IMG/VR virus record: IMGVR_UViG_3300027899_000001
Coordinates: 1 to 64,000 of that record
Reading direction: 5' to 3' (one strand)
Length of the DNA stretch: 64,000 nucleotides
The position numbers and the translations under genes were made by a program. This document shows positions 1-36,642 of this stretch, one piece after another; position 1 is the first letter of the stretch; every line of letters begins with the position of its first letter. The notes under the pieces were generated by a model. The model did no database searches, was not told where the DNA came from, and saw nothing but the letters and a program-made list of their open reading frames with translations.

Positions 1-2
1 GT

Positions 3-1934: not shown

Positions 1935-1958
1935 TAATAATGTATAATATAAAATTTA

Positions 1959-3176: not shown

Positions 3177-3178
3177 TT

Positions 3179-4363: not shown

Positions 4364-4375
4364 ATATATGATATA

Positions 4376-9054: not shown

Positions 9055-9060
9055 AAATTT

Positions 9061-10301: not shown

Positions 10302-10547
10302 ATGATAAAACAGATATTAAAGGGTTACATTTTATGGGTATGGTATTATTTATATAAACCTTACAGAGATAAACGAAAAGAAGATGCGGAAAAACGAATA
10401 AAAATTTGTGAAGCTTGCGAATTTTTTTGGAAGTCAGGACGAAATTGTATATTGTGTGGGTGTTATATGGATGTAAAAACTAAAATGCGATTTGATTTAG
10501 ATGAACACGGAAAAAGTATAGATGGCTGTAAAGAAAAAAAATGGTAA
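10302..10547 (+). CDS. Small Cys-rich protein
   Basis: CEAC...CILCGC...C..KKW pattern seen in small phage proteins. Confidence 0.7.
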   Translation: MIKQILKGYILWVWYYLYKPYRDKRKEDAEKRIKICEACEFFWKSGRNCILCGCYMDVKTKMRFDLDEHGKSIDGCKEKKW

Positions 10548-10569
10548 GGAGCTTAACGCTCCTTTTTTT
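10546..10569 (+). terminator. Rho-independent terminator
   Basis: AAGGAGC-TTAAC-GCTCCTT hairpin followed by a T run. Confidence 0.8.
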
Positions 10570-10591
10570 ATGAATATATAACTTATAAAAG

Positions 10592-13500
10592 ATGAAATCT
10601 ATAAAAAGATTAATTTTAACAATAATTTTAACCTTTGTATTAGGAGTACAATTACTTATGGCAATATTAACAGTAACAGGACAAACAATTATTAATTCCG
10701 ATACAACATGGAACGGATATTATGTTGATCGTTATGAACCTATGACTTTCACGTTTAGTAATAATTCTATAACATCTCAAAATTATTCTAATTACATGCT
10801 TCAGGCGGGAGATGAAGATATTCAACCAACTAATAATAATCTTGCGGGAGAAGTAATAACTGGTAATAGGTTAACATGGAACGGAACCGATATGACAAGT
10901 ATTTGTCATGGAGTATTTACAGGATGTAATATCAACGTTGTAATTAAATATAATTATCTTGAAAAAGTTCCTATGGGTCTTATACGCAAATCAGCAAGTA
11001 ATATGGTTAATACTTCTGGCGGCGTTGCATATAATATACTTAATAAAACATTCATAGGAACAGTAGTTAAAGGCATATCTAATGTTAATATCTATAATAA
11101 TACTTATTATTCAGATCGTACTTTTGCTAATACTCAATACGGAAGAGCATTAATAGATGTTTATACAAATACAGATCTTGTTCCTAATTCTGTAGCACAT
11201 AATACTAAGATTAAGAATAATATATTTTATACTAAATATCAAATAAATAATATACGTGTACTTGATAATGAAAGTTTAATTGGATTTGAATCTGATTATA
11301 ATTTATTTTATTGTGAATCAGGAACTCCTATGTTTGAAATATCAGGAACACAAATAACTTTTGCACAGTGGCAGGCATTAGGATATGATACTCATTCTGT
11401 AGTAGTTAATCCCAATTTTATAGACTTTGTTAATTTTGTTCCAACTACTAGACTAAATTATGGAACTAATTTAGGTTCTACTTGGCAAACTGGCTTATCT
11501 ACTTCAGCTGTTTGGATAGTTGGTTCTACTCCTACTACAAGTGATCAAAATGGTACTTGGCAGGTTGGTGCAAGAGTTTATGCTTCTTCAGCAACTGCAC
11601 CTACAGTAACAACTACTGCTGTCACATCTATAACTAGTACTACTGCTATTAGTGGTGGAAATGTGACTAGTGATGGTGGATCTGCAGTGACTGCCCGTGG
11701 CGTTTGTTGGAACACAAGCACTAATCCCACTATTGCTAATTCAAAAACTAGTAACGGAACTGGAACAGGATCTTATAGCAGTTCATTGACAGGATTATCA
11801 AATGGCGTAACGTATTACGTAAGAGCTTATGCTACTAATTCAGTGGGAACTGCATATGGTAGTAATGTATCATTTGTAGCTGAAAATGCTGTGGCTGGAA
11901 CTTATTATGTATCAACTACTGGTAACGATGCAAATTCAGGCACAATAAGTCAACCCTTTTTTACATTAAATAAAGCATGGACAGTAATTGGCCCAGGCGA
12001 TATTGTTTATGTGAGAGGTGGAACTTACCAATATTTAACATCGCAAGAATGTGTTGGTAAAAATGGAACTGCAGGAAATCTTATAAAAATTTGGGCTTAT
12101 CCGGGAGAGACACCTGTAATAACAAAAGCAGTGGGGTGGACGTATACTCATAGAGCAGGCATTTATTTTGTAGGTAGTTATTTCCATTGGAAAGGAATTG
12201 AAGTTAGTGGATTTACACAGATAGACGATAATGAATACGCAGGTTTTAATGTAGATGATGGTACAAATCATAACATATTTGAACTTCTTAATATTCACCA
12301 TAATGGTGGAAGTAATAGATTGATAAATCAAGACTGTGATGATAATTTGGTGTTAAATTGTGACTTTCATCATAATTACGATCCTCTTACTACTGTTCCT
12401 AGCGCTTATGGAAATGCAGATGGTATGGCAGCAAATCCTAGAGCTGGAACTACTAACACTATAAGAGGTTGTAGATTTTGGTCTAATTGCGATGATGGAT
12501 TGGATTTATATGGAGCGAACGGATTAGTGATTGTTGACAAATGCTGGGCGTGGAGTAACGGTTACAGAGAAGACGGTGTTACAAAAGGAGGTGATGGTAA
12601 CGGTATTAAATTAGGAGGCACCACCGGAGATTATTCTACAACTCATTTACGAACCGTCACCAATTCTTTAGCTTTTCATAATAGAAATGCTGGATTTACA
12701 CAGAACGTAGCGCGATGCATATCTCACATTTATAACAATACAGCCTATCACAATGCTGATGGTGCTGATGTATATAATTTAGGATTTGAATTTGAAGAAA
12801 CTTCTATCGTACATATTTTAAGAAATAATGTAGCTCATGCGAACCAACATCCTACAAATTTACAAGCAAATTACGGTAACTGTATTACATCAAATAATAC
12901 ATGGAATGGTCTTGTTACAGTCACTGATGCTGATTTTACAACTATTAGCTCTACAGGAGTTGATGGAAGCAGACAGTCAGATGGAAATTTACCAGCACTG
13001 TCATTCTTGCATTTGATAACAGGATCTGATTTAATTGCAGCAGGTACAAATGTAGGATTAATAACAGATGGAGATGGTGTTGCTTGGAATAATCCACCAT
13101 CAATGGGTGCATATGAGTATGTAAGTGGAAGTGTAGTAATACCTACAGTAACAACTACTGCTGTCACATCTATAACTAGTACTACTGCTATTAGTGGTGG
13201 AAATGTGACTAGTGATGGTGGATCTGCAGTGACTGCCCGTGGCGTTTGTTGGAACACAAGCACTAATCCCACTATTGCTAATTCAAAAACTAGTAACGGA
13301 ACTGGAACAGGTTCATATGTTAGTTCATTGACAGGGTTGTCTAATGGTGTGACGTACTATGTCAGAGCTTATGCTACTAATTCAGTGGGAACTACATATG
13401 GTAGTAATGTATCATTTGTAGCTGCAAATTCTGCTCCAGGAACTTATTATGTTAAAAACGGTGGTAATAATAATTTAGATGGATTATCAGATGCTACAGC

Positions 13501-16500
13501 ATGGGAAACAATAGATAAAGTTAATTCAACTATTACAGGAGGAAATACTGTTTTATTTAAGCGTGGTAGCACATGGCGTAATCAACAAATAAGACCTGTT
13601 GCTGGTTCAGCAGGAGCTTACACGACTTATGGAGCATATGGAACTGGAGCAAAACCAAAAATTTTAGGTTCTTTAACTGCAAATTCAGGATGGACTAATG
13701 TTAGTGGTAATATATGGCAAACTACCGGATGGACAAAAGATGTGGGAAATATCATTTTTAACAATGAACAAAGCTGTGGTCGTAAATTCATGACTGCTAC
13801 ACCTACACTTACTACTCAGGGGGATTTTTGGTACGATTACGTGAATGACAGAGTACGAATGTATTCTGTAGGAAATCCTGCATCTTATTATACTAATATT
13901 GAATTTGCTTTAAGTCAAGATGCTGTTGTTACAAGTTATAATGCTCCATATATAATCATTGAAGATTTAGACTTCCGTTACTGGGGAAATTGTGTTATAC
14001 AGAATGCTCGTAATTATAGTATTTATCGTAGATTAGATATAAGTTACATAGGTGGTGGAGATGCAGGAGAAACGCAAGGCGCTGCCTGGTATGATACACG
14101 ATGGGGTAATGGAATTCAGATGTGGGAAGGCGACGGATCTTATATTACAGTAGAAAGTTGTAAAATTGATCAAGTTTATGATGCTGGTATTTCACCTCAA
14201 GGCCAAGCGGGTTCTTGGACTATGCATGATATTTTTATAAGAAATAACATTGTAACTAATTGCGAGTATAATTTTGAATTTTGGTTAAGGGCTGGAGCCA
14301 CAGCTTACAATATCTATGTTGAACATAATGTATTTGCTTATGCTGGATATGGGTTTGCACATAATCAACGTCCAGATGCAATTCAAGGGCATAATTTGCA
14401 GATGGGAGGCATGCAAGCTACCAGAAATAATATTTATTTACGTAATAATATTTTTTATATGTCTTTGAATTATAATTATAGTGCATGGTGGTATAATCCT
14501 GGGCCAGGAACAACTCCTCCGGGTCCAAGTACTTATGATGATCTATATAATATCACATTTGATTATAATTTATATTACACTCCGGGCGTATATATAGGTT
14601 TTTTTGATGCACTTCCTACTATATTTAATACATTTGCACAATGGCAAGCAGCTTTTCAAGTAGATGAATCACACGGAAAGGGTGTTGATCCATTATTCGT
14701 TGATCCAGCAAATGGAGATTTTCATTTACAACCGGGTTCTCCTGCCATTGCAGCCGGATTAGCAGTAGCAGGAGTAACAACAGATTTTGATGGAGTTTCT
14801 TATGCAAGTACTCCATCAATGGGAGCGTTGGAATATGTTAGTCCTACTAATAATACTTATTATGTAAAAAATGGAGGAAATGATAATTTAAATGGATTAT
14901 CTGATTCTACAGCATGGGAAACTATATCTAAAGTAAATTCATTTATTAAAGGTGGTGATAAGGTTTTATTCAAACGCGATAGTGTTTGGCGTAATGAAGC
15001 TATATCTGTTGTTAATGGTTCAGCTGGAGCTTATACCACTTATGGAGCATATGGAACTGGGGCAAAACCTCGTATATTAGGCTCTGTTCAATTAAACTCT
15101 GGATGGACAAATGTAAGTGGTAATATATGGCAAAATAGTAATGCTGCTGTGTTAGCTAAACAAGTAGGAAATCTTATTTTTAATAATGAACAAAGTGTAG
15201 GTGTAAAAGTTGCCTCTGAAGCATTATTAAACGCACAGGGCAGATTTTATTGGAATTTTAGTACAGGTGTATTAAGAATGTACTCTGTAGGCAATCCTGC
15301 TCTTTATTACTCTAACATTGAAGCAGCTTTACAACAACAGACGGCTGATGTGTACGGACATTCATATATTAAGTTTGAAAATCTTGATTTTAGATATAGC
15401 GGTGAAGGGACTATTTTTGGGGATAGTAATTATATACAAGTGTATGATTGCAATATAAGCTATAACGGAGGAGCTTATACAGATGTAGGAGGGGGCACAA
15501 GAATAGGAGGAGGAATTGGTACATGGGATAATGCATCATATTGGGAAATATTAAGATGTAGGATTAGTAACGAATATGATGCAGGAATAACCATGCAAGG
15601 GACTGGTGTTACATTAATTCATGATATGATAATAAGAAATAATATTATTGAAAAATGTGAATATAATTTTGAATTTTGGGAAAGACCCAATACTGGACAA
15701 ATGTATAATATATGGTTTGAACACAATACGTTAGCATATGCAGGATATGGTTGGTCTCACACTCAACGTCCAGATTCTCAACAAGGGCATAGCATATATA
15801 TGGGAGGAATGTCAGTTCAAAGACATGACATATACATAAGAAATAATATTTTTTATTCAAGTATCAATGATAATATAGCGTTCTCTTATTACAATGATGG
15901 TTCTTATGATGATTTAATAAATATCACCTTTGATTATAATTTATATTACAATCCTGGAGTTAATACTGCTTTTGCAGATGCTCATGATATCATTTTTCTT
16001 ACATTTGCAAATTGGCAAGCAGCTGTAAGTGTAGATGAATCGCATGGAATAGGAACTAATCCTTTATTTGTTAATGCTGCTGGAGGTGATTATCATCTAA
16101 GTATAGGTTCGCCCGCTATTGCAGCTGGATTAGCAGTAACAGGAGTAACTACTGATTTTGATGGAGTTTCTTACAACTCTTCACCTGCAATGGGCGCATA
16201 TGAATATGTTCCAGGATCTTCTAACATATATTACATAGATCCAACTGGCGCAGATTCTGCAGGAAGAAATGGATCAAATGTAGCAGGACAACAATGGCTT
16301 ACACTTGCATATGCTATAAGTCGTGTTACTACAGGCGATACTATTCATGTTAATCCGGGAACATATAATATAAGTTCGCAAATTACTGTTCCTATTGGAA
16401 TAAGTATAGAAGGAGATGGAATTACTTCAATTTTACGTTCTACATATACAAGTGGTCCTACATTAAATTTAGCTAATTCAGTATTGGGAAGTGGAAATCA

Positions 16501-19500
16501 ATATATAGCTAATATTAAAATGGATGGTGTTTCTACTACCGCGCATACTGCTGTAAATGTATATAGAAGATCAAATGTATCAATATATAATTGTACATTT
16601 GTAGATTTTTTACAATGGGGTGTAAGATATAGAGGGCAAGATGCTGGTGAAGTAGAACCTACTTTGTGGGCAACTGGTAATTCATTTCATGATAATTCTG
16701 TTAATAATTGCTCTATGTATTATTATCCAGGTGGAGATGCTGATGTTGATAAACGAAACGGAAATGGACAAGGTCTTTTAGAAATAAGTGAACAACAAGG
16801 AATGAGAGTATATAATAATACTCTTATACAAACAGGTAGAACTACTTGGCATAATGGATACTGTATAAAAGGCATAATGGGTTATAATAAAGATATTAAG
16901 ATTTATAATAATATCATGACTAAAGCTGCATATACAGAAGCATATGGAATAACATGGGATTTTGTTTTAGAATTTTGGGAAAGTCGAGGAGGAATAGAAG
17001 TTTATGGAAATACTATTACTGGTGGATCTCTTGATTTTTCAGGAAGTGGAACTGAAAATGATACTACAACTCAAAAAGGAATATATGATTATGCTGTATG
17101 GATTCATGATAATTCTATAATGAATACTACTTTAAGCGCATACTCTAATACTCATGGAATATTAATAGAACAAAGCGCAACAGATGTAATTATTGAAAGA
17201 AACTGGATAGAAAATGTATGGGCTGGAATTTATTTTCCACTTACACCAAAAAGTAATCCTATGTATGGAACTATATTTAATAACATAACTGTAAGATATA
17301 ATGTAATAAAAAATGTAGGAACATCTGGAAATAATTTACAAGGGTTTGGAATTCATGGGCCTTATGCTGTTACAAATATGACAGGCAATAACATTCAATA
17401 TTATAATAATACTATAATTGGAAGAAGTGGTTCTAATTCATGGGGTATTCAAATTCCTGTATTAGGAACTTTAACAAATGTGTATGTAAGAAATAATATT
17501 GTACAAGGATTCTCAGGTGCTGGAAGTGCTGGTATATATTGCTATAACTATGGTACAGTTAACTATGCTTGGGTGCAATATAATAATTTGTATCAATGCG
17601 CAAATAGTAATGCACCATTATATGGTTTAAGTATATCTAATCTTACATCAGAAAGTGCGTATGCTGGTACAGTTCCTCCATTCGTATCTACTACAGATTA
17701 TCATTTAACTACAAGTAAAGATGGAATATATATAACTTCAGGCTTGACAGATAAAGATGGCGTTACGCCATCAAATCCTCCAGACATAGGAGCATATGAA
17801 TATGCACTAGTAAATGGTGTTTATTATATAGATCCAACTGGCGCAGATTCTGCAGGAAGAAATGGATCAAATGTAGCAGGACAACAATGGCTTACACTTG
17901 CATATGCTATAAGTCGTGTTACTACAGGCGATACTATTCATGTTAATCCGGGAACATATACAGTAACTACTCAAACAAGTGTACCAATAGGCATAAATAT
18001 TGAAGGAAATGGCATAGGTAGTTCTATTATTAGATCGCATTATATAGCAGGTGATGGAAATCTAAATAACGCATGTTTAGTGTTATCTGGAGGAACAAAT
18101 ACTGATCAACATATTAGTGGACTTACATTAGATGGAGATTCTTTATGGGGAGATAACGCTATAGTTGTATATAATAGAAGTAATGTAAGCATTTATAATT
18201 GTCAAGTAGTTAATTTTTTAACTCAAGGAATTAGATTTGATGGAAGTTCTCCAAGTTTAAGTGTAAATAACAGTCTTTATGGTTGCACAATAACTAATTC
18301 TGGCGGTATAGATACATCTGATAGACGAGCTAATATATTTATAAGAAATAATACAAGCCTACGTATTTATAATAATACTCTTAATCAAACTCTTAGAGTT
18401 TCAAATACAGGGTTAGGAATTAGATTAGAAGATGGAGTTTATGGTTGTAAGATATACAATAATTATTTATATGGAATACAACCTGGCGCTGATTGGTCAT
18501 TTACAATGGAATGTTGGTGTGCTGATACTGTTAATGGTGTAGGTTGGGGATTAGAAATATATGGAAATACTATAACAGGATTAATTGACTTTGGTTCTGG
18601 AGTAAGTAAAGGAACAGGTTCTTATACTTATGCTGTAAGTTTTCATGATAATGTAATGGGAACAGATGTTGCTCATGCTGTTACAGATTATCAACACGGT
18701 TTATTATTTGAATTAAATGGAAGCGATATTATTATTTATAATAACGAATTTAAATTTCTTGATCGTCCTATTTATTTTACATCAGGACAATTTAGTAATA
18801 TAGATATACATTCTAATATAATTAGAAATGTTCCAGCCAGTTATTCTGATGGAGCAGGTATTTTATTTATCGGAAGTGGGTCGCCTACATCAGAACAGAA
18901 TGTATATATACGAAATAATACTATTATTGCTCATACTGGTGGAGTAGGACCGGCACAATATGGCATTTTATTTGATGCAAGAGGTACAGTAAATAATTTT
19001 TACATACAAAATAATATTATTCAAGGATTTTCTTCTGCTCCGTATGAAAGTTATGGAACCACAGGATCTATAGGAACTTTGGTTGTTCAAAAAAATGTTC
19101 TTTATCTTAATGGAAATAGTAATAATATTAAATTAACATTAACACCTACATCTCTTACAAATGATTTAGGGCTTAAATATGATCCAGTGTTTGTAAATGC
19201 AGCTGCATATAATTTTCATATACAATCAACATCGCCTGCATTAAGAGCAGGTTTATATGTAGGATTAGTTTTTGATTATGATGATCAGTTTTGGAATAAT
19301 CCACCTTCTATAGGAGCATATGAATATATGGGTGCTCTTCCTTCATCTATTCCATCAGTTACAACTTCTTCTATTACTAATATTCTTGCAACTACTGCTT
19401 CTGGCGGTGGTACTGTAACACATGACGGAAGTTTAGCATTATCTTCTAGAGGTATATGTTGGAATACTTCAACAAATCCAACTGTGTTAAATTCTTCAAC

Positions 19501-22500
19501 AAATAATGGAGTATCAGAAGGGGTATTTACGAGTTCACTTGTAGGATTAAATCCAAGTACTCATTATTATGTTAGAGCATATGCTGCAAATTCATTAGGA
19601 GTAGGATATGGAGCAAATGTTGAATTTGATACTCTAAAAAATACATCAATTCCAATTGTTACTACTACAGCAATTACTGATATAAGTACTTTTACTGCAA
19701 CTGGAGGCGGAAATGTAACTCATGATGGAAGTTTAGCAGTAACTTCAAAGGGTGTTTGTTGGTCTGTTTTACCAAGTCCTACTATTGATAATACATTTAA
19801 TACTAGTGGTACAGGAGAAGGGTCGTATGTTAGTTATTTAACTGGATTAAATGCATCAACACATTATTATGTAAGAGCATACGCTATTAACGCAGAAGGA
19901 GTTGGATATGGATATGATGTTTCATTTAATACATTAGGTTCAGGAATTTCTTTAGTTAATGGACTTATGGGATATTGGAAATTAAATGAAACAACAGGAA
20001 GCGCGTTAGATTCTGTAGGAAGCATAAATGGTGCCGTTTTTGGTGCTACACAAGGAGTTCCTGGTAAAATAAGTACTGCATATCGTTTTAATGCAGCAAC
20101 AAATAGTTATATTGATTTAGGAATTTCTTGTAAACCTACAACTGCAATATCTTTTGCCGTATGGCTTAATCCAAGCACATTTAACGATATTTATTCAGGA
20201 GTAATAAATAATACTACTTGGGTTAATCCGACAGAACAATATGGCTATAATGTATTTCTTGATAGTAGTAAAATGTTATTTGAATTATTTAATGGCGATG
20301 TTCAAAATTCATTATGGAGCAATGCTACAATAACACCAAATACTTGGCATTTTATTGTTGGAACATGGGATGGCGCAAAAATGAAACTTTATATTAATAA
20401 TGTACTTGATGCAAGCCAAGCTAGAACAACTACTATAGGATACGATCTAGCATCTGTTTTAAGATTTGGTTCTCATTCTGCACCATATGATTATACAGGT
20501 GTTATTGATGAAATAGGAATTTGGAATAGAGCTTTGACTATTTCTGAAGTATCTACATTATATAATAGTAGTAACGGATTAACTTATCCATTCGATGCTT
20601 CAACCAATATTAGTATTCCTACTGTTACAACTTCTTCAGTTACAAATATATTTACAACTAGTGCATCTTGTGGTGGTAATGTAACTCATGATGGAAGCAC
20701 TGCAGTAACAGCTAAAGGTGTATGTTGGAATACATCAATAAATCCAACTGTATTAAATTCTTCAACAAATAATGGAACAGGAACAGGAGTATTTACAAGC
20801 GCAATAACAGGATTAAATCCGAGCACACATTATTATGTTAGAGCTTATGCAACTAACGCAGTTGGAACTGCTTATGGTTCTAATGTTCAATTTGATACAT
20901 CTACATCTCCTATAGTAACCTCAATTCCTACCGTTACAACTTCTTCAGTTACAAATATATTTACAACTAGTGCATCTTGTGGTGGTAATGTAACTCATGA
21001 TGGAAGCACAGCAGTAATAGCTAAAGGTGTATGTTGGAGTATTTTATCAAATCCAACTATTAGTAGTGCATTAACTAATGATGGCACCGGTGAGGGATCA
21101 TTTACAAGCGCAATAACAGGATTAAATCCGAGCACACATTATTATGTTAGAGCTTATGCAACTAATGCAGTAGGAACGGGATATGGAAATCAAATTACAT
21201 TTGATAGTAGTATTCCAGTTTCAGTTATTTCAACTTATTACATAAATGCTATAAATGGAAATGATGCTAGTGCAGGAACTACACAAAATACAGCCTGGAA
21301 AACAGTTGCAAAAGTTAATGCATATACATTTATTCCAGGAGATACTGTTTTATTTAGAAGAGGTGATACATGGAATGAAAGATTGGTTGTAGCACAAAGT
21401 GGTATAAGTGGATATCCTATAACATATTCTAATTATGGTGTTGGCGCTAATCCTATATTTAATGCACAAAATATTCGTCCTAATGGAATTAGAATTGAGG
21501 GCGTATCTTATATAATCATTGATGGTATTGATACCATAAATAGTACTGAAGAAGGAATTGTAGTATTTGACTGGAATGAAATAGGATCATCTAATGTAAC
21601 AATTAAAAACCTTACATCTTTTAATAATGTAAAGGCTGGAATTTATATGTCTATACCTTATGGAACAATAATGGATTGTTCTACAATAAATAATGGTCTT
21701 ACTACACAACATCATGGTATATATATGGGAAGATCTTCTATCTTAAATAATATATATGCTGATAATTGGTTAATAGAAAGATGCCATTCATATGGCAATA
21801 CCGGTGCAGGATATCAAATTTATAATAGTGGATCCGGCACACTAAGATATTCTGTAACAAATAATAATGGGGGCACATCTGGTGGATGGGGTGCAGTAAT
21901 TGATACATTAGCTCCTAATAAAAATGTAAATGTTTATTATAATGTTTTATATAACAATGATTATTGGGGATTAGAAGTAGCTAATCTTAATAGTGGTGAT
22001 GCTGTAAACATTTATAATAATGTTATGTATAATAATGGACAAGCAGATTATGGCGCAGGTTTACATGTAGCTAACAATGATAATGTAACTGATGGCTCAA
22101 TTAAAATAAAAAATAATTTAATTTTTTCAAATGTATATTATGATTTTCAACAATCACAAAGTATATCAAAATATACAGTATCTAATAATGATTATTGGAA
22201 ATCCTTTGGAAATATAATTGTATGGAATTCAATTACATATCCACAAACTCAATTTGCATCATATCAAGTTGCATCTGGCGATATATTATCAATATCAAAA
22301 GATCCTTCAGTTGTAAATGCTGCAGCTTATAATTTTAATTTAACTTCTTCATCTTCATGTAAAAATGCAGGAGTAAATGTAGGATTAACTACAGATTTTA
22401 TTGGAACTGGAATAATAAATTTCCCAGATATTGGTGCTTATGAATTTATAGAACTTAATATTTCAACCCCTACTGTTACTACATCTTTAATAACAAATAT

Positions 22501-25500
22501 TGCAATTACTAGTGCATCTTGTGGTGGTAATGTATCTCATGATGGAAGTACAGCAGTTACAGCTAAAGGTATTTGTTGGAATACTTTTTCAAATCCTACA
22601 ATATACGATTCTTCTACAACAAATGATGGAATAGGAGAAGGAATATTTTATAGCGCGCTAACTAACTTAAATCCAAGTACTCATTATTATGTTAGAGCTT
22701 ATGCAACAAATGAAATGGGAACAGCATATGGAAACGAAGTAACTCTTGATACAAGTAAAAATTCATATTATGTAAATATTGTTAATGGAAATGACTTAAA
22801 TAGTGGAACTACAGAAAATACTGCGTGGAAAACTATAACAAGAGTTAACACAGCATTAACAACTCTTCCTGCTGGTTATGCTATACGTTTTAGAAAAGGA
22901 GATACATGGTATGGAACAATAAATATTGGAAAATCCGGAGCTGCTAATTTTCCAATTACTATAGGTTCTTATGGAACTGGCGCTAATCCAGTAATAACTG
23001 GATTTACTACAGCATCCTCATGGACAAATGCAGGAAATGGTATATATTATACGTCTTTAACTGCGGAATCTTCAACGTTAATGGTATCATTAGATGGTTA
23101 TCAAGCACAAATGGGTAAATGGCCTGCAATAGGTTGGAATCATATAGAAAGTACAAATGGAACAAGTACAATAACTGACACAGCTATAACAAGTACTTAT
23201 AACTGGATAGGTGCACAAGTAGTTATAAGAAAAAATCGTTGGGTTATTGATAAATGTATAATAACTAATCAAAGTGGAAATACAATAACATACAATGATC
23301 CAGATGCGGGATCTTATCAAGCAGTAGCAGGATGGGGATATTTTATACAAGCAGATTTAAGTACATTAGTATCTTATGGAAATTGGTATCATGATCATAG
23401 TGCAAATAGATTTTATATGTATTTTGGCGCTGAACTTCCCGCAAATCATGTTGTAAAAATAAGTTCTTTAGATAGATGTATTTATAATAGTAATTATGAT
23501 CATATAACAATTGATGGTCTTACGCTTGAAGGTGCTAACATAGATGGCTACTATGGATATAATAGTGCATCAAATCATATTATTCAAAATTGTAATATTG
23601 GTTTTTCTGGTCGTCATGGAATATATTTACAATATCCATCAAATTGTATTGTACAAAATTGTAGTATTTATAGTTCAAATGATCATGCCGTTTATTCAAC
23701 TTCTCAAGTTGGTGTAAGTGGACCGTTTACTATTAGTAGAAATACTATCACAAATACTTTTATATTTCCTGGAACTACAGATAGCGGTGATAATCATGGA
23801 AATGCATTATATTCTTGTGCAGATAATACATTAATTCAAAATAATAGAATTCTTAATACAGGACATCTTCCAATTAATTGGGGAGGAACTAATTCAATAA
23901 TAAGAAATAATATTATAGATACATTTTGTTTTACAACTGATAATGGTGCGGGTATTTATACTTATGGTGATAGAAATACTGGAAAACAAGTTATTGGTAA
24001 TATAGTATTAAATGCTATTAGTGCTACAGACGGTACCGATATAAATGATCCTTTATATCCTAATACTCATTTTTCTCATGGCTTATATACTGATGGATTT
24101 AGTGCACATGTTTCATTTATAGGAAATACTGTTGGCAATGTAAATGCATTTGGTATTCGTATGAGTGCTAGTACTAATATTGTACTTAAAGATAATACAT
24201 TTTATCAATCTTATGGATTTGTTTCAGTTTTAAGATCTGATACTCTTATAAGAGATATAAGTGTGTATAATAATGTATTTATATCTAATAATTTAGATGA
24301 ACATTCTCCAGAAGGTATTAAATATGAATCTTATTTTACTCCTATTTCTAGTTCAACTGCAACATCTGAAATTCAAGGATGGGGCTATTGGAATAATAAT
24401 TATTATTATACAAATACTGAAACTGCAATGGTAGTATATGGTACAGATACTGGTCAATGTGCTCCAAAAAGTTTAGAAAAATGGAAAACAAAATATAATC
24501 ATGACACAACTTCTGTATTTTATCCTAAGTTTTCAAGCTATACAATAAATTCATCAGGAACGAACATGTTATCTAATTCTAGATTTGATTCAGATATTAA
24601 TAACTGGACAGGAACATCATTAGCTTCAATATCTTGGGTATCTAATTCTAGTCTTGATGGTGGTGCATTGAAACTTAGAACAAATAAAAAAGATTATAAT
24701 TGGAATTGGTGGGATTCTGATGATTATTTCTATTCATCAATTGGCGCAGTGGAAAGTAATAAAACATATATAATTAAGCTTTTAGGAAAATCTGAATTAG
24801 CAAATAAAACTATTTCTGTTCGTATGTATCAAACAAGTACGGGAAATTCTATTCAACAATTTTTTACTTTACCAAGCACAAGTGTCAATAAAGAGATATT
24901 ATTCAAATATCCTCAAACAGATCCTGCTGCTTCATTACGTTTTGCTGGTGGAGACGGTGATGCATCAGTATATTTTGATAATATTTATTGCTATGAAGCA
25001 AGTGTAAATCTTATAGACGTTGCTGCTACTAATTTTCATTTTATTTATAATACATCAGAAAATATAAATAAGACATATAGTTTAAGCGCTCCAATGAATG
25101 ACATAAAAGGTAATTATTATGCTGCTGGAATGTTAGATTTATCTACATGGAATTCATTAGTTCTTTTTGGAACAGGTACTGTTACTGAAGGAAGCACTGC
25201 AATTACATATGTTCCTACTGTTACTACATCTCCAGTTACAAATATATTTTTAACTAGTGCTTCTACTGGAGGTAATGTAACTAATGGTGGCGGATTAACT
25301 GTTACATCAAGAGGCGTATGTTGGAATACATCTATAAATCCAACTATATTAAATTCTTCAACAAATAATGGAACAGGAACCGGAGTATTTACAAGTGCAT
25401 TAAGTAACTTAAATCCAAGTACTCATTATTATGTTAGAGCTTATGCTGAAAATTCACAAGGTATAGGATATGGTTCTAATGTTCAATTTGATACGTCACC

Positions 25501-27163
25501 AAATATTTCACTTGCAACTGTTACAACTGGAACAATATCTAATATATTTACAACTAGCGCTTCTTCAGGAGGTACAGTTGTACATGATGGAAGTACATTA
25601 GTTACAGCTAGAGGAGTATGTTGGAATAATTTAATTAATCCTACAATATTAAATAGTAAATCTATAGATGGTACCGGAGAAGGTGTATTTACAAGTGCTT
25701 TAATTAATTTGAATGCAAGTACACATTATTATGTTAGGGCATATGCAACTAATGCGGTTGGAACTGCTTATGGTTCTAATGTTCAATTTGATACAAGTAC
25801 ATTAGATGTCTCCATTAGTATTTCGCTTCCTGTTGTTAGTACAATTGCAGTAACAAACATATTATTAACTAGTGCTTCTTGTAGATGTGATATAACATCA
25901 GATGGCAGTGCTAGTGTTACAGCTAGAGGTGCATGTTGGAATACATCAATAAACCCAACAGTTTCTAATTCTCACACAGTAGATGGATCTGGAACAGGAA
26001 TATACACAAGTTCTTTATTAGCATTAAATCCAAGCACACACTATTATGTTAGAGCTTATGCTACAAACGTAGCAGGAACAGCATATGGACTCAATGTTCA
26101 ATTTGATACTAATGCTATTTCCGTTCCTACTATATTTACAAATATTATAACAGATATTAGTTTATTTACAGCAACTGGAGGAGGAAATGTAACTCATGAT
26201 GGAAGTTCTGCTGTAATAACAAAAGGAATATGTTGGTCAATTTCTTCAAATCCTACAATCTTAAATCCGTCAACAAATGATGGAAGTGGTACAGGTTCTT
26301 ACATTAGTTATTTAACAGGATTAAATTCAAGCACTTATTATTATGTTAGAGGTTATGCTACAAATTCTGCAGGTGTTGGCTATGGACAAGTTGTAACATT
26401 TAGTACTTTATCAGCACCAGGAAATTCTTTATTTAGTGGGCTTATGGGATATTGGGCATTAGATGAAATTTCTGGACCTGTGTTAGATTCTTATGGAAGT
26501 ATAAATGGAACAAATTATGGAGCAACGCCAAATGTTCCTGGAAAACTTAATACTGGATATTATTTCGATGCATTAGAACATGATTATATTTCATTTGGAA
26601 ATGTATGTAAACCAACAGCAGGTTTAAGTTTTTCTATGTGGATAAAGGCTCCCGCTCAAAATGATATATTTGCCGGTGTAATAAATAATAATTATTGGTA
26701 TAGCGCCGGAAATCAGGCAGGCTATAATATTTTTATAGATAGTAGCAAATTATTGTTTGAATTATCTAATGGCGCATCAACTTCTTTATATAGTAATAAA
26801 CTAGTTGATGATAATGAATGGCATTTTGTAGCTGGAACTTGGGATGGTTCAATAATGAAAATTTATATTGATAGTTCTGTTGCTGATGCTAGTTTAAGTA
26901 GAACAACTCCATTGGCATATGATGTAACATCAACATTGCGTTTTGGATCTCATTCTGCACCATACGATTATACAGGTATTCTTGATGAAGTTGGAATATG
27001 GAATAGAGCATTAACTCCAACAGAAATAGGTACTTTATATAATGATGGAAATGGTTTAGGATATCCATTTGCAACTCAGGAAGTTAGTACATCATTACGT
27101 TTCTTAACAAATGATGGAAAATACTTAACCTCGAATGATAAAATGATATTCGCAAATACATAA
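10592..27163 (+). CDS. Giant 5523-aa mosaic protein: about 8 right-handed beta-helix modules (one PL9-like), 11 FN3-like repeats and 2 LamG domains
   Basis: Eleven PTVTT...GGNVT.DG...VT..GVCW...NPT...YYVRAYA.N..G..YG repeats; beta-helix NN ladders with GAYEY ends; two GIIDE(I/V)GIWNRALT-type LamG ends; hydrophobic N-terminus. Confidence 0.85.
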   Translation: MKSIKRLILTIILTFVLGVQLLMAILTVTGQTIINSDTTWNGYYVDRYEPMTFTFSNNSITSQNYSNYMLQAGDEDIQPTNNNLAGEVITGNRLTWNGTDMTSICHGVFTGCNINVVIKYNYLEKVPMGLIRKSASNMVNTSGGVAYNILNKTFIGTVVKGISNVNIYNNTYYSDRTFANTQYGRALIDVYTNTDLVPNSVAHNTKIKNNIFYTKYQINNIRVLDNESLIGFESDYNLFYCESGTPMFEISGTQITFAQWQALGYDTHSVVVNPNFIDFVNFVPTTRLNYGTNLGSTWQTGLSTSAVWIVGSTPTTSDQNGTWQVGARVYASSATAPTVTTTAVTSITSTTAISGGNVTSDGGSAVTARGVCWNTSTNPTIANSKTSNGTGTGSYSSSLTGLSNGVTYYVRAYATNSVGTAYGSNVSFVAENAVAGTYYVSTTGNDANSGTISQPFFTLNKAWTVIGPGDIVYVRGGTYQYLTSQECVGKNGTAGNLIKIWAYPGETPVITKAVGWTYTHRAGIYFVGSYFHWKGIEVSGFTQIDDNEYAGFNVDDGTNHNIFELLNIHHNGGSNRLINQDCDDNLVLNCDFHHNYDPLTTVPSAYGNADGMAANPRAGTTNTIRGCRFWSNCDDGLDLYGANGLVIVDKCWAWSNGYREDGVTKGGDGNGIKLGGTTGDYSTTHLRTVTNSLAFHNRNAGFTQNVARCISHIYNNTAYHNADGADVYNLGFEFEETSIVHILRNNVAHANQHPTNLQANYGNCITSNNTWNGLVTVTDADFTTISSTGVDGSRQSDGNLPALSFLHLITGSDLIAAGTNVGLITDGDGVAWNNPPSMGAYEYVSGSVVIPTVTTTAVTSITSTTAISGGNVTSDGGSAVTARGVCWNTSTNPTIANSKTSNGTGTGSYVSSLTGLSNGVTYYVRAYATNSVGTTYGSNVSFVAANSAPGTYYVKNGGNNNLDGLSDATAWETIDKVNSTITGGNTVLFKRGSTWRNQQIRPVAGSAGAYTTYGAYGTGAKPKILGSLTANSGWTNVSGNIWQTTGWTKDVGNIIFNNEQSCGRKFMTATPTLTTQGDFWYDYVNDRVRMYSVGNPASYYTNIEFALSQDAVVTSYNAPYIIIEDLDFRYWGNCVIQNARNYSIYRRLDISYIGGGDAGETQGAAWYDTRWGNGIQMWEGDGSYITVESCKIDQVYDAGISPQGQAGSWTMHDIFIRNNIVTNCEYNFEFWLRAGATAYNIYVEHNVFAYAGYGFAHNQRPDAIQGHNLQMGGMQATRNNIYLRNNIFYMSLNYNYSAWWYNPGPGTTPPGPSTYDDLYNITFDYNLYYTPGVYIGFFDALPTIFNTFAQWQAAFQVDESHGKGVDPLFVDPANGDFHLQPGSPAIAAGLAVAGVTTDFDGVSYASTPSMGALEYVSPTNNTYYVKNGGNDNLNGLSDSTAWETISKVNSFIKGGDKVLFKRDSVWRNEAISVVNGSAGAYTTYGAYGTGAKPRILGSVQLNSGWTNVSGNIWQNSNAAVLAKQVGNLIFNNEQSVGVKVASEALLNAQGRFYWNFSTGVLRMYSVGNPALYYSNIEAALQQQTADVYGHSYIKFENLDFRYSGEGTIFGDSNYIQVYDCNISYNGGAYTDVGGGTRIGGGIGTWDNASYWEILRCRISNEYDAGITMQGTGVTLIHDMIIRNNIIEKCEYNFEFWERPNTGQMYNIWFEHNTLAYAGYGWSHTQRPDSQQGHSIYMGGMSVQRHDIYIRNNIFYSSINDNIAFSYYNDGSYDDLINITFDYNLYYNPGVNTAFADAHDIIFLTFANWQAAVSVDESHGIGTNPLFVNAAGGDYHLSIGSPAIAAGLAVTGVTTDFDGVSYNSSPAMGAYEYVPGSSNIYYIDPTGADSAGRNGSNVAGQQWLTLAYAISRVTTGDTIHVNPGTYNISSQITVPIGISIEGDGITSILRSTYTSGPTLNLANSVLGSGNQYIANIKMDGVSTTAHTAVNVYRRSNVSIYNCTFVDFLQWGVRYRGQDAGEVEPTLWATGNSFHDNSVNNCSMYYYPGGDADVDKRNGNGQGLLEISEQQGMRVYNNTLIQTGRTTWHNGYCIKGIMGYNKDIKIYNNIMTKAAYTEAYGITWDFVLEFWESRGGIEVYGNTITGGSLDFSGSGTENDTTTQKGIYDYAVWIHDNSIMNTTLSAYSNTHGILIEQSATDVIIERNWIENVWAGIYFPLTPKSNPMYGTIFNNITVRYNVIKNVGTSGNNLQGFGIHGPYAVTNMTGNNIQYYNNTIIGRSGSNSWGIQIPVLGTLTNVYVRNNIVQGFSGAGSAGIYCYNYGTVNYAWVQYNNLYQCANSNAPLYGLSISNLTSESAYAGTVPPFVSTTDYHLTTSKDGIYITSGLTDKDGVTPSNPPDIGAYEYALVNGVYYIDPTGADSAGRNGSNVAGQQWLTLAYAISRVTTGDTIHVNPGTYTVTTQTSVPIGINIEGNGIGSSIIRSHYIAGDGNLNNACLVLSGGTNTDQHISGLTLDGDSLWGDNAIVVYNRSNVSIYNCQVVNFLTQGIRFDGSSPSLSVNNSLYGCTITNSGGIDTSDRRANIFIRNNTSLRIYNNTLNQTLRVSNTGLGIRLEDGVYGCKIYNNYLYGIQPGADWSFTMECWCADTVNGVGWGLEIYGNTITGLIDFGSGVSKGTGSYTYAVSFHDNVMGTDVAHAVTDYQHGLLFELNGSDIIIYNNEFKFLDRPIYFTSGQFSNIDIHSNIIRNVPASYSDGAGILFIGSGSPTSEQNVYIRNNTIIAHTGGVGPAQYGILFDARGTVNNFYIQNNIIQGFSSAPYESYGTTGSIGTLVVQKNVLYLNGNSNNIKLTLTPTSLTNDLGLKYDPVFVNAAAYNFHIQSTSPALRAGLYVGLVFDYDDQFWNNPPSIGAYEYMGALPSSIPSVTTSSITNILATTASGGGTVTHDGSLALSSRGICWNTSTNPTVLNSSTNNGVSEGVFTSSLVGLNPSTHYYVRAYAANSLGVGYGANVEFDTLKNTSIPIVTTTAITDISTFTATGGGNVTHDGSLAVTSKGVCWSVLPSPTIDNTFNTSGTGEGSYVSYLTGLNASTHYYVRAYAINAEGVGYGYDVSFNTLGSGISLVNGLMGYWKLNETTGSALDSVGSINGAVFGATQGVPGKISTAYRFNAATNSYIDLGISCKPTTAISFAVWLNPSTFNDIYSGVINNTTWVNPTEQYGYNVFLDSSKMLFELFNGDVQNSLWSNATITPNTWHFIVGTWDGAKMKLYINNVLDASQARTTTIGYDLASVLRFGSHSAPYDYTGVIDEIGIWNRALTISEVSTLYNSSNGLTYPFDASTNISIPTVTTSSVTNIFTTSASCGGNVTHDGSTAVTAKGVCWNTSINPTVLNSSTNNGTGTGVFTSAITGLNPSTHYYVRAYATNAVGTAYGSNVQFDTSTSPIVTSIPTVTTSSVTNIFTTSASCGGNVTHDGSTAVIAKGVCWSILSNPTISSALTNDGTGEGSFTSAITGLNPSTHYYVRAYATNAVGTGYGNQITFDSSIPVSVISTYYINAINGNDASAGTTQNTAWKTVAKVNAYTFIPGDTVLFRRGDTWNERLVVAQSGISGYPITYSNYGVGANPIFNAQNIRPNGIRIEGVSYIIIDGIDTINSTEEGIVVFDWNEIGSSNVTIKNLTSFNNVKAGIYMSIPYGTIMDCSTINNGLTTQHHGIYMGRSSILNNIYADNWLIERCHSYGNTGAGYQIYNSGSGTLRYSVTNNNGGTSGGWGAVIDTLAPNKNVNVYYNVLYNNDYWGLEVANLNSGDAVNIYNNVMYNNGQADYGAGLHVANNDNVTDGSIKIKNNLIFSNVYYDFQQSQSISKYTVSNNDYWKSFGNIIVWNSITYPQTQFASYQVASGDILSISKDPSVVNAAAYNFNLTSSSSCKNAGVNVGLTTDFIGTGIINFPDIGAYEFIELNISTPTVTTSLITNIAITSASCGGNVSHDGSTAVTAKGICWNTFSNPTIYDSSTTNDGIGEGIFYSALTNLNPSTHYYVRAYATNEMGTAYGNEVTLDTSKNSYYVNIVNGNDLNSGTTENTAWKTITRVNTALTTLPAGYAIRFRKGDTWYGTINIGKSGAANFPITIGSYGTGANPVITGFTTASSWTNAGNGIYYTSLTAESSTLMVSLDGYQAQMGKWPAIGWNHIESTNGTSTITDTAITSTYNWIGAQVVIRKNRWVIDKCIITNQSGNTITYNDPDAGSYQAVAGWGYFIQADLSTLVSYGNWYHDHSANRFYMYFGAELPANHVVKISSLDRCIYNSNYDHITIDGLTLEGANIDGYYGYNSASNHIIQNCNIGFSGRHGIYLQYPSNCIVQNCSIYSSNDHAVYSTSQVGVSGPFTISRNTITNTFIFPGTTDSGDNHGNALYSCADNTLIQNNRILNTGHLPINWGGTNSIIRNNIIDTFCFTTDNGAGIYTYGDRNTGKQVIGNIVLNAISATDGTDINDPLYPNTHFSHGLYTDGFSAHVSFIGNTVGNVNAFGIRMSASTNIVLKDNTFYQSYGFVSVLRSDTLIRDISVYNNVFISNNLDEHSPEGIKYESYFTPISSSTATSEIQGWGYWNNNYYYTNTETAMVVYGTDTGQCAPKSLEKWKTKYNHDTTSVFYPKFSSYTINSSGTNMLSNSRFDSDINNWTGTSLASISWVSNSSLDGGALKLRTNKKDYNWNWWDSDDYFYSSIGAVESNKTYIIKLLGKSELANKTISVRMYQTSTGNSIQQFFTLPSTSVNKEILFKYPQTDPAASLRFAGGDGDASVYFDNIYCYEASVNLIDVAATNFHFIYNTSENINKTYSLSAPMNDIKGNYYAAGMLDLSTWNSLVLFGTGTVTEGSTAITYVPTVTTSPVTNIFLTSASTGGNVTNGGGLTVTSRGVCWNTSINPTILNSSTNNGTGTGVFTSALSNLNPSTHYYVRAYAENSQGIGYGSNVQFDTSPNISLATVTTGTISNIFTTSASSGGTVVHDGSTLVTARGVCWNNLINPTILNSKSIDGTGEGVFTSALINLNASTHYYVRAYATNAVGTAYGSNVQFDTSTLDVSISISLPVVSTIAVTNILLTSASCRCDITSDGSASVTARGACWNTSINPTVSNSHTVDGSGTGIYTSSLLALNPSTHYYVRAYATNVAGTAYGLNVQFDTNAISVPTIFTNIITDISLFTATGGGNVTHDGSSAVITKGICWSISSNPTILNPSTNDGSGTGSYISYLTGLNSSTYYYVRGYATNSAGVGYGQVVTFSTLSAPGNSLFSGLMGYWALDEISGPVLDSYGSINGTNYGATPNVPGKLNTGYYFDALEHDYISFGNVCKPTAGLSFSMWIKAPAQNDIFAGVINNNYWYSAGNQAGYNIFIDSSKLLFELSNGASTSLYSNKLVDDNEWHFVAGTWDGSIMKIYIDSSVADASLSRTTPLAYDVTSTLRFGSHSAPYDYTGILDEVGIWNRALTPTEIGTLYNDGNGLGYPFATQEVSTSLRFLTNDGKYLTSNDKMIFANT
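11599..11769 (+). repeat. 171-bp exact direct repeat (second copy 13141-13311)
   Basis: FN3 copies 1 and 2 are nucleotide-identical over this span by manual alignment. Confidence 0.85.
16235..16367 (+). repeat. 133-bp exact direct repeat (second copy 17828-17960)
   Basis: Identical N-caps (IDPTGADSAGRNGSNVAGQQWLTLAYAISRVTTGDTIHVNPGTY) of two otherwise divergent beta-helix modules. Confidence 0.85.
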
Positions 27164-27165
27164 TC

Positions 27166-27180
27166 GAATATATAAATAAA
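27166..27180 (+). promoter_or_regulatory. Putative phage late promoter GAATATATAAATAAA (representative of at least 14 copies)
   Basis: GA(A)TATATAA recurs upstream of starts on both strands; this copy contains the T4 late consensus TATAAATA. Confidence 0.65.
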
Positions 27181-29034: not shown

Positions 29035-29772
29035 ATGAATCATCAAAAAGTCTATGATGCTATAATTCAGAAAGCAAAATCTGAAAATAGAATTAAATTA
29101 CAAAAAAATCAAGAAGGTTATGTTTATTATGAAAATCATCATATATTACCAAAATGTTTAGGCGGAAGTAATGATGAAGAAAATTTAGTTTTATTAATCG
29201 CAAAAGAACATTTTGTTTGCCACAAATTACTTACATATATCTACAAAGAAAATATATCATTAATATATGCGTTTTTTATGTTATCTCATTTTGAAAAATA
29301 TAAAATATACATTTCATCAAGAGATTATGAAAATATAAGAAATTTAATTGCAATTACCCCTATAACTGATGAAAAAAGAATAAATTTAAAATTAGGTGTT
29401 AAAAAAAGAAAACCTATTTCAGAAAATACTCGTAAAAAGATGAGTGATTTAAAAAAAGGAAAAATACCTTGGAATAAAGGAAAAAAACATTCTGAAGAAT
29501 CAAAGAAAAAAATGAGTGAATCACAATTGAAACGTGAAAGTTTTTCGCAAAAAACACGGGAAAAAATGAGCGAATCACACAAAGGAAAACCCATAGGTAA
29601 AGGACGACAATTATCAAAAAAACATAAAGAAAATATAAGTAAATATAGAAAAGGAAAGATTGCAAATAATAAAGGAAAAATTGCTATATATAAAGATAAT
29701 AAAAAATATTTTATAAATGAAAATAGATTAGAAGAATATATACAAAAAGGCTATATTACAAAACAACGTTAA
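29035..29772 (+). CDS. Free-standing HNH homing endonuclease with NUMOD3-type repeats
   Basis: YYENHHILPKCLGGSNDEENLVLL.AKEHFVCH; KGKKHSEESKKKMSES repeats. Confidence 0.85.
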   Translation: MNHQKVYDAIIQKAKSENRIKLQKNQEGYVYYENHHILPKCLGGSNDEENLVLLIAKEHFVCHKLLTYIYKENISLIYAFFMLSHFEKYKIYISSRDYENIRNLIAITPITDEKRINLKLGVKKRKPISENTRKKMSDLKKGKIPWNKGKKHSEESKKKMSESQLKRESFSQKTREKMSESHKGKPIGKGRQLSKKHKENISKYRKGKIANNKGKIAIYKDNKKYFINENRLEEYIQKGYITKQR

Positions 29773-36594: not shown

Positions 36595-36642
36595 GTGTCT
36601 ATTTGCTAAAACTTTATGTGGGATGAGATATATAAAATAAAA

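Follow-up and report, generated by a model that had tools for sequence, protein, structure and literature searches.

A 5,523-residue jumbo-phage protein of beta-helix, FN3-like and LamG modules: a candidate single-chain glycan-targeting array encoded beside a neck-like gene

The closest described systems to the gene analyzed here are large myophages that likewise carry many beta-helix depolymerase units, namely the jumbo Klebsiella phages vB_KpM_FBKp24 (phiKp24) and RaK2/phiK64-1, and phage CBA120. Phages usually place one depolymerase on each tailspike, which in the multi-spike phages is, as far as is known, trimeric, and gain breadth by adding spikes. In phiKp24, depolymerase activity has been confirmed for 11 of the 14 receptor-binding proteins (PMC13385381; PMC9700779; PMC10253068). 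The subject of the present analysis is a single gene, P0001, located on the + strand of the first 64 kb (64,000 nucleotides, hereafter the window) of the IMG/VR virus record IMGVR_UViG_3300027899_000001, a single contig of 405,016 bp with a guanine plus cytosine (GC) content of 28.8%. Its product suggests another arrangement, in which many enzyme and lectin modules are fused into one chain that can be re-dealt by recombination.

The best explanation makes P0001 an accessory gene in the late region of a jumbo myophage (405 kb) with kinship to the Lak/Mahaphage group. Its product would resemble beads on a string: eight beta-helix modules, FN3-like spacers and two LamG lectin-like domains. This reading as a whole, an accessory gene for a modular glycan-targeting chain of captured modules, is given a probability of roughly 0.6. 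An earlier reading of the window (the original prediction) had placed the gene in a phage, which is borne out by genes for TerL, sheath, tube and fibres, the TerL being 34-35% identical to those of the Prevotella Lak megaphages. The Mahaphage lineage, to which the Prevotella Lak megaphages belong, is predicted to infect Bacteroidetes (PMC7162821).

Modular architecture of P0001

The frame is free of stop codons under table 11 and is the longest open reading frame (ORF) of the contig, the next two encoding 5,002 and 2,304 residues. Windowed self-comparison and all-against-all BLAST of the modules give the order signal-like N-terminus, N0, F1, A, F2, B1, B2, C1, C2, F3, F4, LamG1, F5, F6, D, F7, E, F8-F11, LamG2, with the following window coordinates (P0002 is a giant relative described below).

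10592..27163, +, whole coding sequence, 5,523 aa (ORF, table 11)
10592..10684, +, signal-peptide- or signal-anchor-like segment: MKSIKR, 22 hydrophobic residues, then TGQ, without a lipobox Cys (by inspection)
10592..11593, +, module N0 (aa 1-334), beta-helix-like, 63% identity to the P0002 N-terminus
11594..11881, +, FN3-like F1, matching the N-terminal domain of the BT0360 model NF049889
11882..13135, +, module A, PL9 lyase beta-helix by likeness to PF22842, NF041899 and PDB 1ru4 / 5olq
12419..12610, +, predicted PL9 catalytic centre, D610, D634, D635, D638 and K673 (alignment to Pel9A, 1ru4)
13136..13423, +, FN3-like F2, 96% aa identity to F1, with a 171-nt exact DNA repeat
13424-14839, +, module B1, 'choice-of-anchor Q' beta-helix family, tandem paralogue of B2
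14840-16210, +, module B2, tandem paralogue of B1
16211-17803, +, module C1, large uncharacterised beta-helix family (AlphaFold2 model)
17804-19327, +, module C2, tandem paralogue of C1
19346..19933, +, FN3-like F3 and F4 (motif counts, repeat alignment)
19934..20611, +, LamG/ConA-like domain 1 (PF13385, E 2.8e-21)
20612..21208, +, FN3-like F5 and F6 in tandem (86% DNA-level matches)
21209..22462, +, module D, beta-helix (PF13229, 37 bits), N-cap like the GH136 N-cap
22463..22753, +, FN3-like F7 (motif counts, repeat alignment)
22754..25207, +, module E, beta-helix at ~22754-24268 and a 313-aa region at 24269-25207
25208..26407, +, FN3-like F8-F11, four in tandem (motif counts, repeat alignment)
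26408..27160, +, LamG/ConA-like domain 2 (PF13385, E 2.7e-22) and a short C-terminal tail at 27095-27160, LRFLTNDGKYLTSNDKMIFANT

The coordinates of the single 5,523-residue ORF are exactly those of the original prediction, and its eleven FN3-like repeats and two LamG domains were recovered in the same numbers. Its eight beta-helix modules were also counted again; their description as distinct needs qualifying, as they form six core families and the likeness between families is confined to the N- and C-terminal caps. The tandem paralogues B1 and B2 are 57.6% identical, and C1 and C2 are 40.7% identical, in the module BLAST.

The eleven repeats are about 96 residues long, show the motifs YYVR[AG]YA and GxCW eleven times each, and are 54-96% identical to F1. 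Against PF00041 they score 43.8 bits when summed, with individual repeats below threshold, and there are partial matches to the fn3, NAR2 and DSCAM-FN3 models of Pfam; a profile of all 11 repeats matched FN3 domains exclusively in the PDB, although weakly (best E 0.0027). Because the Pfam matches are partial and the PDB matches weak, the wording 'FN3-like' is used. The LamG domains score 76.7 and 80 bits against PF13385 (gathering cut-off 27.6), LamG2 being 58% identical to LamG1.

Module A is, as judged from its residues, a PL9 lyase with an intact Ca/Lys centre and predicted activity. It scores 106.6 bits against PF22842 (cut-off 25.2) and matches the PelN model NF041899 at E 1.6e-72, with 244.7 bits, which is under the 740-bit NCBIfam equivalog cut-off; in the PDB it matches 1ru4 (E 2.5e-36, query residues 7-396) and 5olq (E 1.1e-34). 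D610, D634, D635 and D638 align with the four Ca ligands of Pel9A, and K673 (in GIKLGG) aligns with its catalytic Lys (in GFKLGG). In the numbering of Jenkins et al. 2004 the corresponding Pel9A sites are D209, D233, D234 and D237 (Ca ligands) and K273 (base). Three A modules of P0002 and six bacterial homologues keep the catalytic columns, whereas the A-like module of a shorter phage relative, L002, has lost them.

For the B family, a word search retrieved 475 relatives, many of which carry the C-terminal domain (CTD) of the type IX secretion system (T9SS), PF18962, or are named 'choice-of-anchor Q'. The B-family profile matches GH136 enzymes in the two end caps only. Membership of GH136 was accordingly rejected for B, D and E, in which the N-terminal ~90 and C-terminal ~130 residues match those of the lacto-N-biosidases (LnbX, BsaX, TnX), whereas the central catalytic coils do not align.

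C1 has no Pfam or PDB sequence match, yet an exhaustive search places it in a family of 1,042 clusters (at E<1e-3), most members of which are 530-750 aa long with the module after a signal peptide. In a 92-sequence alignment of this family E254 and D275 are invariant and an Asn ladder is seen. The AlphaFold2 model of C1 (models cover C1 and the neck-like neighbour) is a right-handed beta-helix of high predicted quality (pLDDT 93.8, pTM 0.94), for which GH136 enzymes are the top Foldseek hits. With Z-scores of 24-28 it also resembles AlgE4, RbmB, alginate lyases, inulin fructotransferases and the Sf6, HK620, CBA120, phi29 gp12 and Pam1 spikes, and the beta-helix of the adhesin PfbA is similar as well; no one family stands out, and predicted viral structures (BFVD) agree.

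The remaining modules have less specific assignments. D and E score above the gathering threshold of PF13229 Beta_helix (37 and 32.7 bits), and E has a match to NosD of 20.0 bits, below the cut-off of 23.6. The C-terminal 313 aa of E (24269-25207) have no Pfam match; a CBM4/9 assignment for this part, suggested by an Atlas feature score of 0.80 to clusters of beta-helix plus CBM_4_9, was kept as a mere lead. N0, which has no Pfam match, is assigned as beta-helix-like solely because it resembles the C-terminal half of D (29% identity, E 2.6e-13). Catalytic competence is thus supported by residue conservation for the PL9 module and suggested for the B and C families, in which acidic and basic residues are invariant or near-invariant over 70-90 diverse sequences. 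Of the originally proposed array of depolymerases and lectins, the sequence shows at least one intact lyase centre, residue conservation of an enzyme-like kind in B and C, and LamG domains of lectin type. B and C are both large uncharacterised beta-helix families (C with >1,000 clusters) that probably hide new polysaccharide-degrading activities.

A variable slot beside the neck-like gene

With the neck gene as anchor, the content upstream of it was compared in >60 related phage contigs. A backbone of radical-SAM/methyltransferase, TPR-protein and neck genes is kept around the slot. In at least 12 relatives the slot is empty, the TPR gene lying directly 5' of the neck gene, and these include the closest relative by neck identity (L006, 73%); since it is empty in the closest relatives, P0001 is considered dispensable for the virion. 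Three relatives have LamG proteins only (a 653-aa double-LamG protein in L033 and one LamG protein each in L012 and L064). In L002 (the same as the 71.8-kb contig L065) the slot holds a 1,911-aa protein with the order C-like, F, F, A-like, five F, tail; the contigs of L009 and L035 end in fragments of B/C-like modules plus F repeats. In L026, L029 and L063 the neck gene is preceded by a gene for a fibre protein without a signal peptide, homologous to the fibre genes at 386-405 kb of the present genome.

A word search for giant relatives retrieved P0002, a protein of 4,824 aa encoded on a 17-kb contig and followed by a 549-aa gene, with the layout N0 (63%), F, F, A, F, A-fragment, F, A, F, A, five F, LamG, F, gap, F, C-like, six F. 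The L002 protein and P0002, both counted among the contents of the slot, are thus built from N0, A, C, LamG and FN3 modules in an order unlike that of P0001. Elsewhere the modules occur as separate genes within a few kb of one another: in L099 a LamG gene and a gene for a B-like module (63% identity to B1), each with a signal-peptide-like start, lie beside tail-fibre genes, and a second contig from the sample of P0002 has LamG, B-like and PL9-like genes beside a GIY-YIG endonuclease gene, where some of the N-termini were read. P0014, the top C1 hit and one without a signal peptide, was not accepted as slot evidence, because its contig (40% GC) has no other gene in common with the present phage. 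Taken together, these comparisons of sequence indicate that P0001 stands at the extreme end of a family whose members have their modules reshuffled, and the empty, short and giant versions of the slot offer a natural series for the growth of such arrays.

Searches with tblastn found no paralogue of any module in the 405-kb genome outside the gene itself, and the first 3,000 aa gave short FN3 or N-cap matches at most against 50,697 phage records. The second giant ORF of the genome (5,002 aa; genome 198289-213297, - strand; L093:290-15298) is PKD-rich and unrelated to P0001.

The bacterial relatives point to the likely source of the modules. Among the 26 bacterial loci that match F1-A-F2, 20 belong to named Bacteroidota (Bacteroidales, Bacteroidia, Tangfeifania, Chitinophaga, Saprospiraceae), 2 are unnamed chromosomes and 4 come from other phyla; their proteins have a signal-peptide start and a T9SS-type CTD or FISUMP-type end. 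The best B1 relative, at 69% identity, is a bacterial protein encoded beside katG and fur, and another B relative lies in a bacterial cluster of carbohydrate-active enzyme (CAZyme) genes with GH53, GH123, GH172, GH51, a sulfatase and a T9SS-tagged lyase. Against five Bacteroidota genomes that hold PL9/FN3 relatives B1 gave cap matches only, and the B family was then found by word search. These matches support the view that the nearest cellular relatives of the FN3-like, PL9, B and C modules are secreted proteins, mostly of Bacteroidota and many with a T9SS CTD.

GC at third codon positions (GC3) is 0.16-0.19 in the segment F1-A-F2-B1-B2 (11594-16210); the remainder of P0001 has values of 0.07-0.13, and other genes of the phage 0.04-0.14. 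The raised GC3, together with the 171-nt repeat shared by the F1 and F2 copies that bracket module A, fits a comparatively recent insertion of the A/B segment by way of FN3 repeats. Assembly of the whole chain would have involved three routes, namely the capture of modules that Bacteroidota export, often as T9SS cargo, tandem duplication (B1/B2, C1/C2 and the FN3 runs), and recombination between FN3 repeats. Two proposals of the original prediction fare well here: the gene is cassette-like, in that relatives have the same module types in other order and number in the same slot, or as separate genes elsewhere, and the style of its FN3 repeats hints at capture from host surface proteins.

The genes and signals that flank P0001 in the window are as follows.

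6388..10296, +, 888-aa FkbM-methyltransferase/radical-SAM/SPASM protein and 411-aa TPR protein, syntenic in most relatives
10302..10547, +, 81-aa Cys-rich ORF (CxxC...CxC), zinc-ribbon-like, between the TPR gene and the terminator
10546..10571, +, terminator-like hairpin AAGGAGC-TTAAC-GCTCCTT with T-run (hairpin and T-run at 10546-10564)
10571..10582, +, promoter-like motif TGAATATATAAC, its end 10 nt 5' of the giant-gene ATG
27191..28921, +, neck-like gene with gp13/gp14-like domain and lectin-like folds (AlphaFold2, pLDDT 76)

Three collagen-like fibre genes and then the radical-SAM/methyltransferase and TPR genes precede P0001, and the neck-like gene follows it, so that the gene lies where the original prediction had put it, between fibre/glyco genes and a neck gene. 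The FkbM/radical-SAM fusion and the TPR protein may modify fibres or glycans. A putative end of the upstream transcription unit is provided by the hairpin (two terminator sites were found in the search, against 0.1 expected in shuffled sequence). The promoter-like motif, given as GAATATATAA genome-wide, lies directly 5' of the giant-gene ATG. In the form (G)AATATATAA it is 14-fold enriched 5' of genes on both strands, with some 60 further places in the 405-kb genome, and within 60 nt of gene starts, on the upstream side, the 8-mers ATATATAA and AATATATA show a 14-fold enrichment (66 and 64 of ~350 genes, respectively). It stands mostly 5-26 nt ahead of the ATG, a distance that implies very short leaders. 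The predicted promoter of the gene's own is thus a reasonable, though putative, assignment. The motif recurs at 27166-27175, 5' of the neck gene. It resembles the T4 late promoter TATAAATA but also precedes non-structural genes.

The assignment of 27191..28921 as a neck gene is supported by the predicted model, in which the N-terminal ~230 aa match T4 neck chains in Foldseek (9mkb_0, E 5.3e-7, TMt 0.47; 9lu5_M, TMt 0.59); this part is common to Lak and Tenacibaculum phages, and the protein has 61 viral relatives in IMG/VR at 43-73% identity. The C-terminal ~330 aa of the model are like legume lectins, ERGIC-53 and the receptor-binding domain of clostridial neurotoxin (ConA-type jelly rolls); a lectin on a phage neck, as the model would imply, is unusual. 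The surrounding neck/terminase/sheath/tube block also contains three paralogous homing endonuclease genes (phrog_655; 29035-29772, 30855-31403 and 36616-37356). The fibre block spans genome positions 386691-405016 (L094) and window positions 1-5590; it encodes a 2,290-aa protein with PKD and DUF285 and includes an ORF of 1,722 aa with collagen repeats, which is cut off by the end of the contig. A copy of the contig's first 100 nt is present at 403955, the contig ends not being resolved as circular.

Localisation and alternative readings

By eye, the N-terminus of P0001 has a signal-like n/h/c pattern with a long h-region (22 aa), the beta-helix beginning at about residue 40. Hydrophobic N-termini are also found in the homologues P0002, L002, L001 and P0165, their nature being conserved but not their sequence. 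No adaptor or virion-anchor domain was recognised in P0001 (N0 has no Pfam match, and no PHROGs scan of the giant protein was made), and an unrecognised anchor may be present. The T9SS CTD PF18962 has no match in the whole of P0001, nor in its last 251 aa at E up to 5. With a Sec signal and no T9SS CTD, an exported P0001 would therefore stay in the periplasm of a Bacteroidota host until lysis.

The C-terminal tail has a tandem 'G-K-hydrophobic-hydrophobic' pattern, for example NDGKYLTSNDKMIF and NGKIVMYNGKIVRR. It is common to P0001, P0002 and L002 and absent elsewhere in the phage genome; among L001-L092 only L002 has it. Such a motif occurs in 15% of B/C-family C-termini compared with 4% of internal windows, and sits at the extreme end of signal-peptide-bearing beta-helix proteins without a T9SS CTD, where it may act as a so far unrecognised signal for sorting or docking. 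As a verdict on virion docking it was set aside, since it occurs in both bacterial and phage contexts.

Because every phage homologue has a hydrophobic start and no adaptor domain is recognised, we lean towards a protein that is exported or released at lysis, for which the odds are judged to be about even; display as a virion fibre is assigned a distinctly smaller share of the likelihood, and other readings of localisation or function a minor one. Huge phages have been noted to encode proteins located at the membrane or surface, with possible effects on susceptibility to other phages (PMC7162821). Should the signal-like N-terminus be functional, P0001 would be a rare giant exported phage enzyme, and such an enzyme might influence superinfection, the release of progeny or the structure of biofilms among freshwater Bacteroidota.

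The most serious competitor, although a less probable one, is that P0001 is a virion-displayed polyvalent depolymerase fibre, mounted on the neck or collar like T4 fibritin or forming part of a fibre network, which penetrates several types of capsule or exopolysaccharide (EPS). The gene closes the fibre block directly 5' of the gp13/14-like neck gene, the position that wac occupies in the T4 gene order; it has the promoter-like motif in common with the neck gene, and the neck neighbour itself carries lectin-like domains. The beta-helix, furthermore, is the canonical tailspike fold, and C1 resembles the Sf6, HK620, CBA120, phi29 gp12 and Pam1 spikes with Z-scores of 24-27 and matches phage structural proteins in BFVD. 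The pre-neck fibre proteins of some relatives lack a signal peptide, and the tail motif that P0001 has in common with P0002 and L002 could serve as a peptide for docking. Set against this, the signal- or anchor-like start is conserved and Sec export would divert the protein from cytoplasmic assembly, no anchor domain was found ahead of a beta-helix that begins at about residue 40, and the slot is empty in the closest relatives. The FN3-linked design and the closest homologues are, moreover, those of bacterial secreted enzymes, which are, as far as is known, monomeric, and not of trimeric spikes.

A more elaborate proposal is a recombination-driven 'cassette rack' by the neck gene in megaphages of Bacteroidota, in which host-derived beta-helix enzymes, LamG lectins and FN3 linkers are fused to chains of up to ~5,500 aa with the FN3 repeats as crossover points. 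The product would be an enzyme, exported by Sec, that destroys receptors or clears matrix, or else a polyvalent fibre mounted on the neck. In its entirety this is speculative and rather unlikely; if true, phages would have a way, undescribed for them, of reaching multi-glycan specificity with a single chain.

It is improbable that P0001 is an auxiliary metabolic gene, that is, a multi-enzyme for environmental plant or algal polysaccharides (pectin- or RG-I-like) that feeds the infected cell during a long infection and is not directed at the host surface. PL9 is a pectate/rhamnogalacturonan lyase family, a relative of the B modules lies within a bacterial CAZyme cluster, the modules are like secreted glycan-degrading enzymes of Bacteroidota, and the source is a freshwater metagenome. 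However, the protein has no T9SS CTD or lipoprotein signal that would direct it to the cell surface, the gene is located in the structural block and not among metabolic genes, and the module set is very variable in close relatives, which better fits an arms race or a host-surface target.

There is a similarly small chance that the protein is mainly an adhesin, with most of its beta-helices catalytically dead, in which case the chain would only bind glycans and would fasten infected cells or particles to mucus, to a biofilm or to particles, or serve as a decoy. Binding or spacing is the role of the eleven FN3-like repeats and the two LamG domains, inactive copies exist in the family, since the Ca ligands have been lost from the A-like module of L002, and the C1 model resembles PfbA. 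Module A, on the other hand, retains all of the PL9 catalytic residues, and the B and C families keep their acidic and basic ones.

The gene is real and intact. A frame of 16.6 kb that stays open in AT-rich DNA is no chance event, and an alternative genetic code is unneeded, as table 11 gives 85.5% coding and the open frame. Of the sampled words of 19300-25299, 98% are present in one 2017 freshwater metagenome run, probably the source sample, and Logan contigs of that run, data that are not independent of the assembly, cover this region with zero mismatches at an even ~34-39x. Exact DNA repeats reach 171 nt between F1 and F2 and 77 nt between F5 and F6; the other FN3 copies have no more than 42 nt in common, so that ordinary reads span them, and the F1-A-F2 layout is the single possible path through the assembly graph. 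One small Logan contig fuses F5 to F7 in register (20804 -> 22659), omitting 1,854 nt; such a junction would remove F6 and module D, the exact identity of F5 and F7 is just 27 nt, and the contig could represent a minority deletion variant or a repeat artefact.

That separate genes or host DNA were merged through FN3 repeats is very improbable, for although the Logan contigs stop at every FN3 repeat, a small contig links F5 to F7 and F1 and F2 share a long exact repeat, the depth is even and free of mismatches across 6 kb, the frame is unbroken through DNA of 29-37% GC, GC3 is low as elsewhere in the phage, most FN3 copies are distinguishable and the F1-A-F2 path is unique, and proteins of the same design (4,824 and 1,911 aa) were assembled independently from other samples. 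The original prediction had named misassembly as a risk to be judged on reads: sequence and depth of 19300-25299 came through this check, whereas the module order did so in part.

Several observations weigh against the reading of P0001 as an accessory glycan-targeting chain. The Logan contigs end at each FN3 repeat, which is why the module order was only partly checked. A single module, A, is linked to a characterised catalytic mechanism, and D, E and N0, in which no catalytic residues were identified, could be purely binding modules, as the adhesin reading would have it. The gene lies within the structural block, where virion proteins are expected. An internal M23 (equivalent to M20 in P0002) could be the true start and would erase the signal, and the periplasm is an odd place for a polysaccharide enzyme of 5,523 aa unless it is released by lysis. 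A freshwater bacterium of the phylum Bacteroidota is the most likely host, an assignment that is indirect.

With these reservations, the accessory-gene reading would have P0001 carry several different glycan-binding or glycan-cleaving sites on a flexible chain; polysaccharides of an acidic or complex kind, in the host envelope or the matrix around it, would be the target, and capsule or EPS would be cleared or gripped; the substrates, the multi-specificity, export and the benefit to the phage are here inferred. That the protein covers several capsule types and that this is linked to capsule phase variation, both as originally proposed, is pure conjecture, the source being a freshwater metagenome and not a gut Bacteroides system.

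Comparison with known systems

The individual parts of P0001 have well-described counterparts. Module A aligns over ~390 residues with Pel9A of Dickeya (1ru4) and with BT4170, the rhamnogalacturonan lyase of B. thetaiotaomicron (5olq), and keeps their catalytic residues, but it is one of eight modules in a phage protein and the identity is moderate. The secreted or T9SS-exported glycan enzymes of Bacteroidota ('choice-of-anchor Q' or 'T9SS type A sorting domain-containing') start with a signal peptide, where P0001 has a signal-like segment, and have in common with P0001 the beta-helix with the N-cap YYV...G.D and the C-cap DIGAYEY, FN3-like repeats that are 56-73% identical to the phage repeats, and LamG or CBM additions. 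In contrast, P0001 lacks PF18962, lies in a phage structural block and is 4-10 times longer than most of the bacterial relatives retrieved (0.5-1.3 kaa; largest 2.8 kaa).

With respect to gene order, P0001 invites comparison with fibritin (wac) and the gp13/gp14 neck proteins of T4, in which a variable fibrous or accessory gene is likewise followed by the neck genes. The analogy is one of position, drawn from the T4 map, and P0001 is like T4 fibritin in neither sequence nor fold.

Compared with the multi-tailspike phages, in which separate depolymerases branch from an anchor via adaptors (phiKp24, RaK2, CBA120), the eight modules of P0001 form one FN3-joined chain. The C1 model is close to the CBA120 TSP3, HK620 and Sf6 spikes (Z ~24-27); yet P0001 has a signal-like N-terminus, no adaptor was found, and attachment to the virion is putative. 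Searches of the literature on polyvalent depolymerase arrays turned up no mention of tandem catalytic beta-helices on a single chain. Already known, therefore, are polyvalent depolymerase arrays built as separate tailspikes on branched fibres, as well as the known or widespread families from which the modules come; what is new is the single-chain design, the size of the protein, its signal-like start and the cassette slot beside the neck gene.

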